A stretch of DNA of 64,000 nt from Ministeria vibrans ATCC 50519 (taxonomy: Eukaryota; Protista; Filasterea), in the NCBI GenBank assembly GCA_943704425.1, contig CALSCP010000945.1, forward strand, positions 155,165-219,164, read 5' to 3'. Positions 39,412 to 44,109 of the stretch are shown piece after piece; position 1 is the stretch's first letter; each line of letters starts with the position of its first letter. The notes under the pieces are model-generated. The model saw nothing but the letters and a program-made list of their open reading frames with translations. It did no database searches and was not told the origin of the DNA. Both the position numbers and the translations under genes were made by a program.

Positions 39412-39734
39412 AAGAATACAACCCATTTATTAATGATACAGTCACCACGCGAAGACACAGCCAGACCGCCTTGCAAACTCGACCGAAACTCTAGAGGTAA
39501 CATGGGAGAACAGTGGCAGGTCATAGTGCTGTGTCGACGCTATCCAGTGAGGCAATCGCAATGGTACGCCATACCCCCAGAGGAGGCTTAGGGCTCTGAC
39601 ACCATGAAGGTGTCTGTCGGCAAGGAGTGTAAAGTCGAAGTCGTGGTTGAGGCAATCGGATCGGTGGTCGGCGGCGGCAAGTCCAAATAATAATAATAAT
39701 AATAATAAGGAGAACAGTGGCAGGTCATAGTGCT
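39412..39734 (+). repeat. Dispersed repeat with internal 26-bp direct repeat
   Basis: Matches 16660-16762; GGAGAACAGTGGCAGGTCATAGTGCT occurs at about 39506 and 39709. Confidence 0.7.
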
Positions 39735-39753
39735 AATAATAAGAATAAGAATA

Positions 39754-39797
<44 letters not shown>

Positions 39798-39848
39798 GTA
39801 ATAATAATAATAATAATAATAAGGTTGTACACTAACAATAATTTCTTT

Positions 39849-40417
39849 TCAATCCCACTCATCATCATTCTCGACGTCAGACTCTTCGTCAGACTGAGGT
39901 TCAAGCGCCCCACGTCGACCAAACATGCTCTGGGACAGAAGCGAGCCGAGGTTGAGCGGAGCCGTACCACCAGCAGGAGAGAAGGACTGGGACGAGGCAA
40001 CGACCGGCCGGAGAGCCTTGAGACCCTGGTGGGAGCGGATGGAGTCGAGAAGACCATCGGTGGAAGGGGCAACAACAGCAGCATTAGCAGCAAAAGCAGT
40101 TGCGGGTTTTAGCTTCGTCATGGACAGATTCATGGCAGTAGTGGTGGTCATAGTGCTACCACCTGGGGTACTCTCAGCGAGCAGAGGTGGCGGCGGAGGC
40201 GCAGGGGGCGGAGGAGGACCACCGCCAGCGGGAGGTGCTAGGTCGAGCGCTGGGTCAAGGTCGGGGGCCGTGGTGCCGTTGAGGGCACGTCCCAGGGTCT
40301 GTAGGAGGTCGGACTGGTTGATGTTGGTGAGGCCGTGTTGGTTGAGCAGATCCGACATGAGTTTGGCAGCAATGTCTTCCAGATTGGGAGGCATGTTGGG
40401 AGCGGAGGGGGACGGGG

Positions 40418-40453
<36 letters not shown>

Positions 40454-42332
40454 CTTCAGTAGCATTCGTAGCACCAGTAGCAGCGATCGGGGGTGTTGGC
40501 GGAAAAAGAGTGGTGGTGGTGGTCTGGGTGAACACACGAGAAGGTGGCGGGGGAGGGGGATTGGTGGTGATAATGGGATTACGTGTGATGGTGGGCGTCT
40601 CGTAGGGATTGGAGTCGTCCATAATCAGCGTGGCCTGGCGACGGGGCGAGTCTTCGTTGGTAGGAGTGTCGGCGGGCGGAGGAGGGGGCGGGAGTGGGGA
40701 ATCATCAAGTGGCACAGCTGTGTCGCGTGGAAGGGGCGGAGGCGGAGGGAGCGAGTCAAACAACATTGAGGTGGATCTCTCGACGCGACTCTGCTCAATC
40801 AGTGCCGATGCAGGCGCTTCAACAACACTCACATTAGCGGTTTCTTCCTCCTCCTCACCGCTTTCTTCCTCCTCTTCACTTTCATCCTCTTCATCGCTCT
40901 CCTCGTCATCGTCACTCTCATCTTCTTCCTCACTCTCATCTTCTTCCTCACTCTCCTCCTCCTCCTCGTCACTCTCCTCCTCTTCCTCTTCACTCTCCTC
41001 CTCCTCCTCCTCCTCCTCTTCTTCTTCCTCCTCAGTGGAGTCTCCCTCCACAATACCCTCCACGTACATCTTCCGTGCCGACTGGCTTCGGGTGGGCGGA
41101 GGTGGACGAAAGCTGACGGGACGGGCCTGAGCGGGTTTGAGTCGCTTTGACGCTGTAAGGAGTTCCTTCTGGAGACCCGTTGGCGCTGGAGGGGGACGCC
41201 TCAGTCGCCCTGCAGCAGCAAGAAGCTCCTTCTGCAGCCCTGTTGGCGGAGGTGTCGAGGGTGTGGGTGTGGAAGGCGTGGCTGGTGTGGGTATGGAAGG
41301 AGAAGGGGAAGGAAGAAAGATGGCATGGTCGTCGAGGTCGGCACGCGATGTGCGACGGGTGGGGACTGCGGGGGCAGACGGGTCGCTGTCTGCCTTGGAG
41401 GGTTGTCTTGGACGGGGTTGTGCGGCCATGAAGGCTGGAGGCATCTCCGAGTCGCTTGTGCGACGGGTGACAGATGGTGGCGCAGGATCGACTGCCGACT
41501 GATTGTGAAAGGTAGAAGGGCCCTTGTCACTGCTGCGTCGTCGAACGAGTGCTGGCGGGTGTTCATTGGCACTGGTTGACGCACTGTGTCTGTTGGTCAT
41601 CTTCTGTGCCTGTGATGATGATGGTGGTGGTGGCGGTGGTGGGGATGCACTTGTTGTTGCTGTTGACGGTAAATGCGAGGAGGAGGCGGGCGAAGAGGTA
41701 GACGAGGGACGCGACAGACCCGATTGGTTGACAACATCGCGTGTGAGCAGTGGCTTGCGCGGTGGTCCCGTAGTGGCTGTCGACGACGATGGTCGCTGCT
41801 CTGCAATGCGCGAACCCTAACAAATGCACACAACAACAATAATGACGACGTTAAATACTCATATAAAACAAAAAAGAAAGCGTGTTGTGGTGGTACCCTA
41901 TGAGACGACGCGGATCTTCTGGGAGGCGGCGGCGGAGGTGTTCCGTCGTCATCATCCAATGCACCGTTGGTGGGAGGTCTTGTGCTGCTGCTGGTAGTAA
42001 CGGACGAGACTTTGTCGAGGTCTGTTGGCATGAGGGTTTTCATGTCAATCAGGTAGCGAAGGCGACACTGCAAAAAATGAATGATACTATTATTTTACTT
42101 CTGTTGCGGTTGCTGCTCAAAAACTTACGATAGACTGTCCCTCGGGAACAAGCGAGTGCTTTTGATAGAACTCGACGAGTTTCTTAAACGATTTGAAACG
42201 GAGCGCACTAAACACGTACCATTGCTACGAGAGGGAGAGAGAGTTTAAGAGAGTTTAAGAGAGTTTAAGAAAGGTACAGAGAGTTAAACAAAGCGATAGA
42301 GAGAGAGAGAGAGAGAAAGAAACAAACAAAGC

Positions 42333-42417
<85 letters not shown>

Positions 42418-43012
42418 AAGAAAGAAAAAAAGCGATAGAGAGAGAGAGAGAAGAGGAAGAAACAAACAAAGCGATAGAGAGGAGAGAGAGAGACAAAGTG
42501 ATAGAGAGAGACAAAGTGATAGAGAGAAAGAGAGAGAAATAAAGCGATGAAGAGAAACAAAGTGATGGAGAGAAAGAGAGAGAGAGAAACAAAGCGATAG
42601 AGACAGAGAAAAACACAGTGAAGAGAGACGTGAGAATAGGAGTGGTGCGTTTGCTGTTGAGTGGTGGCACTGTTGACTCGCAGAGGTTGGTTGTTTGGAG
42701 AACGACCCATTTCCCCCTCACCAACGCCACACCACGCTTTAGCATATGCATTTTCACTTCATATCGGACGTTCTGGTGAGGGGACGTTGGGCTTTTGGGG
42801 AGAAATGGCGAAGGAAATACCAGTAAAAAACAATCACTTCTTACGTCGCTCTTTTCGTCATGGTAGACGCGGAAGCGCTTGACAGTGCCTTTGTGAGTAA
42901 CGGAGAGGCAAAAGGCGCCGGGAATCGTGGCGGACGGGGTCGCCAGAAAGGCCCCGTCCAGCGTCGAGTAAGCCGACAGCACTGACTTGACAAAGTTTTT
43001 GCTTTGGCTCAT
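39849..43012 (-). CDS. SH2 - proline-rich - WH2 - VCA protein (candidate Arp2/3 nucleation-promoting factor)
   Basis: Exons 43012-42845 (DGAFLATPSATIPGAFCLSVTHKGTVKRFRVY), 42224-42129 (QWYVFSALRFKSFKKLVEFYQKHSL), about 42067-41897 (CRLRYLI...PPPPPPRR) and about 41816-39849 all splice in phase 0. Ends DGLLDSIRSHQGLKALRPV...LGSLLSQSMFGRRGAL...SDEESDVENDDEWD*. The start codon is tentative. Confidence 0.85.
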
Positions 43013-43390
43013 TGGAATTTGACAGGACGACGCCAGTGGCCAACGAGGCAAACAGAAAGCAGCCAGACAGACAGTCTTGTGACACGAGCGAGAGTAAGAG
43101 AAAAAGAAATATATGAAGAAGAAGAAGATACGAGAATTAATATATGAATTACATATAGTGACTAGTACATATCAGATCAGTTGTTCTATTCACGTTCTAT
43201 TCTTCACAGGGACCTACAGGGCTCACAGGTTGTTGGGGTCTCTTCACCACACAAGATCCGCGCACTCCCGGACAATTTTAAGGCCATTTGTTAGTTATTA
43301 GTTGTGAGTTGTTTCGGCTTTGTTGGAATTCACTTTGTTGTATTCTGTTGTTTCAGTTTTTATTAATTTTCGCTCTAAAATACTTGGAAT

Positions 43391-44109
43391 ATGTCAGACG
43401 GAAGGAAAGCACTGCGAATCAAGACGGGCGTGCTGAAGAGGTGTGGCGCTCCCCCTTTGAGCTGTGTGTGTGTGTGTTGGGCCTGTCCGTTTGTTTGTGC
43501 TGTCCGCCTGCACTGCGTCCACCGCCACAGAGCTGTGTGTGCTCCACACATGCCCTGTGCATCCGTGCCCCGGCGTCTTTGTTGCCCCTTCTTCTTTCTT
43601 TGTGTTCCTGTCAGAATCAGTTGAGAAAAAAACGACAACGCTCACTTGTCAAGTTCAGCCTGAAATTGGCCCCTGTTGTCCACGCACCCCCGCCTATCCG
43701 TTGAAAATCCATCGGTCTGTCACTATGAGATGGACAGATTCGATTGAGACGACCGTGGAGGATACGCCTGTCAAACATCTTTGAGTGAGTCATCCTCACT
43801 CGCACTCACTCTCTGTTGCTCCTTTCTCCACCCACGAACAGGCTCCACAAGGAGATTGAAATGTACACCAAGGAAGCAGACAAGCATCGTGCGAAAATCG
43901 ACGAGATGCACGCAAGCAATGTGGATGCGTATGACATCAAGAAGATGGGGGAGGTCCTCGACGAGACGGCCGCAATGGTGCCCGACACACAGCGCCGCCT
44001 GGAACGCGCACGGGCGGAGATGGCCGACTTGCTCGAGGCAGAGACGGCACTTGCCTCGTCCGAAGAGTACAAGGCTGCCAAGAGCATGTACGACGCGACT
44101 GCCGTCTGA
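43391..44109 (+). CDS. TBCA: Tubulin-specific chaperone A (2 exons)
   Basis: LRIKTGVLKR|LHKEIEMY...DAYDIKKMGEVLDETAAMVPDTQRRL. Confidence 0.93.

Follow-up and report, generated by a model that had tools for sequence, protein, structure and literature searches.

An SH2-headed gene with a WASP-type VCA tail predicted in the filasterean Ministeria vibrans

The WASP family makes up the class I nucleation-promoting factors (NPFs), which are defined by a C-terminal WCA/VCA region (PMC10330494). Classes within the family are set by the N-terminal domain, which decides the signal that switches on Arp2/3-driven assembly, and to date every newly recognized head has brought to light a further use of branched actin in cells. 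A survey of the family by Kollmar et al. names WASP, WAVE, WASH, WHAMM, WAWH and WAML, and the term "SH2" occurs 0 times in it (PMC3298513); a 2023 review of the mammalian members includes WHIMP and none with an SH2 domain. Here we describe a predicted gene on the minus strand of a 64,000-nucleotide stretch of the Ministeria vibrans ATCC 50519 assembly (contig CALSCP010000945.1, positions 155,165 to 219,164; hereafter the window, in whose numbering positions are given unless another locus is named), in which an SH2 domain appears to be joined through a proline-rich and acidic linker to a WH2-C-A tail.

A literature search for an SH2-bearing member of the WASP family found none, only the relay in trans via Nck or Grb2. 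Within the literature searched, this agrees with an earlier reading of the same DNA made from its letters (the sequence-only reading), which knew of no class I NPF with an SH2 domain. A paper on holozoan phosphotyrosine signalling presents many SH2 architectures, with no WH2 partner in its text. As choanoflagellates alone pair SH2 with 53 other domains according to that paper, a new SH2 partner would not be astonishing in itself.

We lean towards reading the locus as one gene for a protein of ~800 residues, which would be an extra, lineage-specific member of the WASP family: a truncated SH2 domain lacking its arginine, a disordered linker, and a WASP-type tail with a proline-rich region (PPR), a WH2 motif (V), a connector helix (C) and an acidic end (A). 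As read from the predicted protein, the head belongs to the SH2 family and lacks this Arg, and the PPR, V, C and A motifs stand in canonical order. The order SH2, proline-rich and acidic linker, WH2-C-A is supported by the translated sequence, and is most simply that of a single gene.

The VCA tail

The tail lies at the 3' end of the last and longest of four predicted exons (E4). Its parts, listed in the direction of translation, are the following.

40182-40226, minus strand: poly-proline tract GGGPPPPPAPPPPPL, ~45 residues upstream of the WH2 motif, where WASP-family proteins usually have their profilin/SH3-binding PPR
40002-40061, minus strand: V, WH2 motif TDGLLDSIRSHQGLKALRPV (Pfam 13.6 bits; helix pattern of Kollmar et al.; actin complex model)
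39903-39956, minus strand: C, connector helix LNLGSLLSQSMFGRRGAL; residues i, i+4 and i+8 are hydrophobic and RR follows
39852-39902, minus strand: A, acidic tail EPQSDEESDVENDDEWD, whose last residue but one is Trp; stop codon, 39849-39851

The protein ends in ...SDEESDVENDDEWD directly before the stop codon, so that the terminus is acidic with a penultimate Trp, and further tracts of five to seven prolines (P5-P7) occur in the linker, giving a proline-rich region upstream of the VCA; both are features by which class I NPFs are recognized. By published rules the C helix has three large hydrophobics with three residues between neighbours, after which come two or three Arg/Lys (PMC3298513). The C region LGSLLSQSMFGRR follows them, with large hydrophobics at i, i+4 and i+8 and then Arg-Arg, and the helix aligned with IVGALMEVMQKRSKAI of N-WASP and with the C regions of the SCAR and WASP proteins of M. 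vibrans itself, one Arg being invariant. The terminal WH2 fits the WH2 helix pattern of the same rules with a relaxed LKKT element, and in Pfam it remained below threshold (13.6 bits, E 0.056, cut-off 23.1).

When the last 100 residues were shuffled 200,000 times, the ordered composite of WH2 helix, C and acidic Trp appeared 0 times, and the single motifs appeared at rates of 0.6% (helix), 1.3% (C) and 0.02% (A). The composite was present in one of the 575 open segments of the window, and that segment was the E4 tail itself. Database searches with E4 covered 39852-40973 and 41013-41816, and six-frame scans covered the whole window. When residues 200-374 of the C-terminal piece were searched against 5.8 billion proteins, limited to those of 205-654 residues and with VCA-only similarity worth ~30 bits, only three matches were returned, all of them WASP/N-WASP proteins (E 0.045-0.59) that carry WH1, PBD or WH2 domains. 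BLASTP against one of the three, a tardigrade WASP, aligned V, C and A colinearly (pairwise E 2e-6), and the same colinearity was seen with N-WASP and with the M. vibrans SCAR and WASP tails. Pfam, applied to all exons at E values up to 10, detected no WH1 and no PBD (CRIB/GBD) domain, and a phmmer search of the tail against solved structures gave a chance match only, with no significant VCA chain. These sequence comparisons support a tail of the WASP type. The sequence-only reading had proposed a terminal WH2, a central helix and an acidic Trp tail; the helix pattern and the colinearity with WASP/N-WASP uphold it, and the Pfam score of the WH2 falls short.

A complex of the WH2 with the conventional actin of M. 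vibrans was predicted with ESMFold2 in three runs with three controls, the actin being entered as two chains because its gene is split by an assembly gap. The ipSAE was 0.88 in all three runs, against 0.00 for the best control; 51 of 78 solved complexes and 2 of 108 mismatched pairs attained that score, a yardstick that is rough here because the job differs from the calibration. The partner pLDDT was 63-64, and contacts common to the runs amounted to at least 56%. On the actin side the contacts fell at 143-148, 167-168 and 341-355, plus 23-28 (standard numbering), and on the peptide side at L34, L35 and I38 and then L47-R48 (numbering of the 100-residue tail piece, 39852-40151). We take the modelled contacts to be the hydrophobic cleft at the barbed end, where the LKKT strand passes over Asp24/Asp25, as in established WH2-actin structures.

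A single gene of this build could also encode a protein whose tail is no Arp2/3 activator, namely a scaffold of the WIP/verprolin or Ena/VASP-GAB kind that binds actin monomers and serves as an SH3 ligand, its C-A portion being fortuitous or decayed. The structural model covers the WH2-actin step only; the sub-threshold Pfam score, the two Gly within the C region (MFGRRGAL) and the internal PTGLQKELL repeats described below, which resemble further monomer-binding helices, would suit it as well. It would leave unexplained why the C region obeys the i/i+4/i+8 plus RR rule, why the A region closes the protein with DDEWD, as it does in genuine activators, and why the best matches are WASP/N-WASP proteins with V, C and A all aligned. 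We consider the scaffold unlikely.

The SH2 domain and the gene model

The predicted exons and introns upstream of the tail, together with E4, are as follows.

42845-43012, minus strand: exon 1 (E1), 56 codons, 168 nt; opens at the first in-frame ATG; SH2 alpha-A to beta-D
42225-42844, minus strand: intron 1, 620 nt, GTAAGA...TAG; contains a compound (GA)n/(CT)n microsatellite; codon score negative in the exon frame
42129-42224, minus strand: exon 2 (E2), 32 codons, 96 nt; SH2 beta-E, beta-F and alpha-B (WYVFSALRFKSFKKLVEFYQKHS)
41897-42067, minus strand: exon 3 (E3), 57 codons, 171 nt; CRLRYLI, then a Ser/Thr/Pro-rich linker with PPPPPPRR; alone no family match
41817-41896, minus strand: intron 3, 80 nt, GTACCA...TTAG; AT-/T-rich between GC-rich exons
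39849-41816, minus strand: E4, 655 codons plus TGA, 1968 nt; disordered Ser/Pro/Thr-rich region, repeats, acidic block, proline-rich region and VCA
42722-42772, minus strand: possible cassette exon, 51 nt, an in-frame AG..GT interval within intron 1; codon score +0.21 over only 17 codons

The SH2 domain was evaluated exon by exon, with E1, E2 and E3 taken separately. E1 matched the Pfam SH2 family (PF00017) at 26.9 bits against a cut-off of 21, over profile positions 11-56 of 77, and reached 25.4 bits in a genome-wide scan for SH2; the genome holds at least 28 SH2 segments, a number in keeping with a holozoan protist. Among solved structures E1 matched 146 SH2 chains, the best being the N-SH2 of SHP2 at the top, SAP/EAT-2 and Grb2. 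E2, which alone is too short for Pfam, aligned to the beta-E to alpha-B portion of the SH2 domains of Src and Vav2. A profile was derived from 10 full SH2 domains of the M. vibrans assembly; on it, E1 occupied positions 19-54 (21.3 bits) and E2 positions 59-81 (12.6 bits). Run on the 1791 six-frame open segments of the window, the same profile placed these two exons first and second (16.7 and 12.5 bits), with the third segment at 6.0. CRLRYLI at the start of E3 would be the beta-G strand, judged by eye against Src-type SH2 domains, and the interval between E2 and E3 is a canonical 61-nt intron inside the domain.

E1 and E2 are thus abutting, complementary halves of an SH2 domain on one strand and in order, which argues strongly for a genuine intron 1 and against a misjoin at its GA/CT repeat; on this sequence evidence the E1-E2 join appears well supported. 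The placement of the domain across successive exons agrees with the sequence-only reading, as do the exons themselves: four on the minus strand, of 168, 96, 171 and 1968 nt, at the coordinates it had given. The introns (620, 61 and 80 nt) all run from GT to AG, with donors GTAAGA, GTAAGT and GTACCA and with acceptors made of a pyrimidine-rich tract plus YAG, and as all four exon lengths are divisible by three, every junction is in phase 0. In-frame codon scores were +0.40 for E1, +0.48 for E2 and +0.38 for the C-terminal 374 codons of E4, and those of the introns were negative; the score was trained on globular genes and is uninformative in the Ser/Pro-rich part of E4 at 41601-41816. The cassette within intron 1 would add 17 residues to the D-E loop of the SH2 domain; such an exon is possible from its splice sites and frame, and the fold does not need it.

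The invariant Arg at beta-B5 of SH2 domains, within the FLVRES motif, grips the phosphate of phosphotyrosine. In E1 it is replaced by Thr (FLATPS, versus FLARPS with Arg32 in SHP2; codon 42938-42940), and it is retained in 10 of 10 aligned SH2 paralogues from the same genome. The N-terminal beta-A strand, with its conserved Trp and Arg alpha-A2, is not present either, since the protein begins about where beta-A would end, and no segment coding for W[YF]xG was found between the ATG of E1 and the upstream TBCA gene. From its sequence the domain appears degenerate and is probably not a usual phosphotyrosine reader. With both the Arg and the first strand missing, a role as phosphotyrosine adaptor is less likely than phospho-independent docking or autoregulation, and we infer that the domain most likely serves in docking or autoregulation, whether independently of phosphorylation or as a weak, atypical module. 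The N-terminal SH2 fold of the sequence-only reading is kept, E1 exceeding the Pfam cut-off and E2 continuing the profile, with the correction that the invariant Arg and first strand are absent.

An upstream exon candidate at 43287-43214, phase-compatible via an AG within codon 2, was rejected: it is not SH2-like, its sites are weak and its codon score is negative. Two further ATGs lie upstream at 43170 and 43154 (region 43154-43172, minus strand), each followed by a stop within one or two codons; they would be minimal upstream open reading frames if the 5' untranslated region (UTR) extends there.

The join of E3 to E4 is the weakest link of the model; it is drawn from intron anatomy, and the 5' end too is placed by anatomy. 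Removal of intron 3 sets E3 in the VCA frame, retention shifts the frame to a stop at 41597, and the in-frame stop of the downstream frame coincides with the acceptor TAG of the intron. Openness of the frame was discarded as an argument for the join, being weak where none of the three frames is closed. The locus might instead hold two genes, one for a small SH2-only protein (E1 to E3) and one for a WASP-like factor lacking WH1 and GBD that starts at the ATG at 41600. The 583-residue frame does have this ATG of its own, upstream of it all three frames are open and codon scores do not favour the proposed frame, and the link of E3 to E4 is drawn from anatomy. Against two genes, only 80 AT-rich nt with canonical GT..AG ends separate E3 from the open frame, in compatible phase and with the in-frame TAG exactly at the acceptor. 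So short an interval leaves no space for a terminator and a promoter, and an unspliced SH2 frame would end only at 41597, beyond the start codon proposed for the second gene; both points argue that E3 and E4 belong to one gene, and we regard the two-gene arrangement as improbable.

That a misjoin at the GA/CT microsatellite set a foreign SH2 exon 1 beside the gene, an outcome that the sequence-only reading had given as an example of what would refute it, is highly improbable: there are breaks of this assembly at other CT repeats (a gap at (CT)n interrupts the actin gene, whose 3' exon lies on two contig ends), but E1 and E2 on either side of the repeat are complementary SH2 halves, on the same strand, in the right order and at abutting profile positions, and the two runs with the largest share, of unrecorded kind and taken as DNA, contain 0.89-0.92 of the sampled 31-mers of 39700-43700.

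The single-gene model also fits its surroundings. Upstream, a divergent TBCA (tubulin cofactor A) gene begins at 43816 (Pfam TBCA, 79 bits); with an apparent convergent gene on the other side, this leaves a single gene slot between the two. The 29.7-Mb assembly contains one copy of the gene. Runs presumed to be RNA contain 0.68-0.69 of the sampled 31-mers of 39700-43700, about the share that would be expected from the exons plus some 400 nt of UTR, which is an indirect indication. Taken together, we hold the four-exon gene model to be probable. At the downstream boundary, the apparent end of the convergent gene was placed by eye near 39690, and an (ATT)n/(AAT)n microsatellite fills 39700-39848, that is, the ~150 nt between the stop codon and this end; if the end holds, both 3' UTRs would overlap or abut.

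Linker, genome context and proposed role

Three features of the E4 linker, apart from its proline tracts, were read from the translation.

41133-41246, minus strand: tandem PTGLQKELL..RL[RK] motifs, two copies starting at 41246 and 41183; each a short amphipathic helix with a cluster of basic residues
40841-41035, minus strand: Glu/Asp/Ser acidic block of about 65-75 residues
40593-40610, minus strand: NPYETP, a YxxP context with one of only two Tyr in the 655-residue E4

The 9-codon cores of the two PTGLQKELL copies differ by five synonymous and 0 non-synonymous changes, which points to constraint on the peptide and on its reading frame. The sequence-only reading had taken these repeats as WH2-like, which gains nothing from Pfam: they did not match its WH2 family, and their spacing is three residues shorter than in WH2. 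They are possibly a WH2- or GAB-like actin-monomer site, judging from the motif, and resemble the short G-actin-binding helices of Ena/VASP, a likeness we offer as a lead only. The poly-proline and PxxPxR tracts and the Glu/Asp/Ser block of ~70 residues were found as that reading had described them; PxxPx[RK] sites number three, plus one in the C-terminal part. More speculatively, NPYETP may be a place where the protein itself is phosphorylated and an SH2 domain docks.

Elsewhere in the genome we found a canonical WASP with WH1, CRIB, PPR and WH2 (contig C2642), a SCAR/WAVE ending in EDWD (C1883) and ARPC2 (C390). The Arp2/3 machinery and its standard activators are thus present, and the SH2-VCA gene would be an extra one. 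Among 1.84 billion representatives, phmmer found 0 matches to the C-terminal 374 residues; a protein atlas gave no usable match and a metagenome scan no relative, though an orthologue with only VCA likeness could escape all three. A VCA profile census of the genome recovered only its four training sequences, and WASP dominated a mixed full-length profile.

A further VCA-like module in an unusual setting stands in an 840-codon open frame of the genome, at L009:392-2911 (G000:C986, minus strand). It begins with an actin-like segment (Pfam Actin 26.4 bits, positions 18-67) and continues with an acidic block, poly-proline and an internal WH2-C-acidic-Trp module (AGLLSSIRFGKSLSKTP ... FDSLLSMLSSRRSTLA ... 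SSDEDW), after which ~400 residues follow; its VCA-like part is L009:1478-1765. As to the actins themselves, the conventional gene at L024:1504-2394 (G000:C932) is cut by an N-run gap at a (CT)n repeat, and near-identical copies of its 3' exon lie at the ends of two other contigs, L027:3-335 (C1139) and L028 (C2000 end); the assembly breaks at CT/GA microsatellites. There are also two intronless, divergent actin-like genes, L025:1492-2631 (C1769) and L026:982-2238 (C498), of 379 and ~370 residues and with Pfam Actin scores of 303 and ~329 bits.

Several points weigh against one gene with a WASP-type activator tail, and we give them together here. At the gene level, all splice junctions are predictions from sequence, with E3-E4 and the 5' end drawn as described above, and 41601-41816 is open in all three frames with an uninformative codon score. 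The SH2 domain, lacking Arg beta-B5 and strand beta-A, could be a decaying one. In the tail, the WH2 is below the Pfam threshold, solved structures yielded no VCA chain, and activation of Arp2/3 is suggested by motif identity. The complex was modelled on a two-chain actin, and its pass marks a likeness to WH2-actin that may be recall of solved complexes. Finally, no orthologue or paralogue was found to lend support from conservation, in searches blind to orthologues of more than 654 residues or sharing the VCA only.

Were the gene and its tail to work as their motifs suggest, the WH2 would deliver an actin monomer, the step for which the model gives support, and the C helix and acidic-Trp tail would bind the Arp2/3 complex and switch it on, as those of WASP, N-WASP and SCAR do. 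The SH2 domain and the proline motifs would then set where and when activation occurs. A more specific possibility is a single-chain, receptor-proximal nucleator, whose SH2 domain would dock via an atypical pocket with Arg beta-D4/beta-D6 (VKRFRV) on tyrosine-phosphorylated or other partners while its own VCA activates Arp2/3, making it a new class of the WASP family. We find this doubtful. If it were true, the two-protein relay of animals (Nck or Grb2, then N-WASP) would be collapsed into one polypeptide. The sequence-only reading had proposed just such a fusion of adaptor and NPF in a single chain; the order SH2-linker-VCA and the WASP-type tail are retained here, and a phosphotyrosine-reading SH2 becomes less likely, its Arg being Thr and its first strand absent.

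An SH2-headed member of the family in a close unicellular relative of animals, if true, would mean that modules of the tyrosine-kinase era and the actin nucleation machinery were recombined before animals arose. It would also be a natural one-chain version of the Nck-N-WASP relay exploited by pathogens and synthetic biologists. The missing arginine would make it a test case for SH2 folds that stop reading phosphotyrosine. Should the gene model or the activity fail, the locus would encode only a lineage-specific, proline-rich WH2 protein.

Comparison with known systems

The nearest likeness is to WASP and N-WASP, with which the predicted protein shares a poly-proline region, a predicted WH2, a connector helix and an acidic tail with a penultimate Trp; V, C and A align colinearly. 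WASP and N-WASP have WH1 and CRIB/GBD domains, whereas the SH2-VCA protein has an SH2 head, a single WH2 and a linker with two short helices of unrelated sequence and an extended acidic block. Lineage-restricted members of the family, WAWH, WAML and WHIMP, already combine a VCA with another N-terminal domain or lack such a domain (PMC3298513, PMC7112243); of these, WAWH keeps a GBD, WAML has an IMD and WHIMP a WAVE-homology region, and none has an SH2 domain.

The likeness to the adaptors Nck, Grb2 and Crk is conceptual. They couple an SH2 domain to Arp2/3-dependent assembly, and the linker of the SH2-VCA protein carries PxxPxR sites of the SH3-binding type. The adaptors recruit N-WASP in trans and use the phosphotyrosine-binding Arg, whereas the M. 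vibrans protein would be a single chain with no SH3 domains and an SH2 without that Arg. An SH2 fold without the pocket arginine is also found in the C-terminal SH2 of Spt6 (PMC3507883), which differs in having no sequence kinship with the present domain beyond the SH2 fold.

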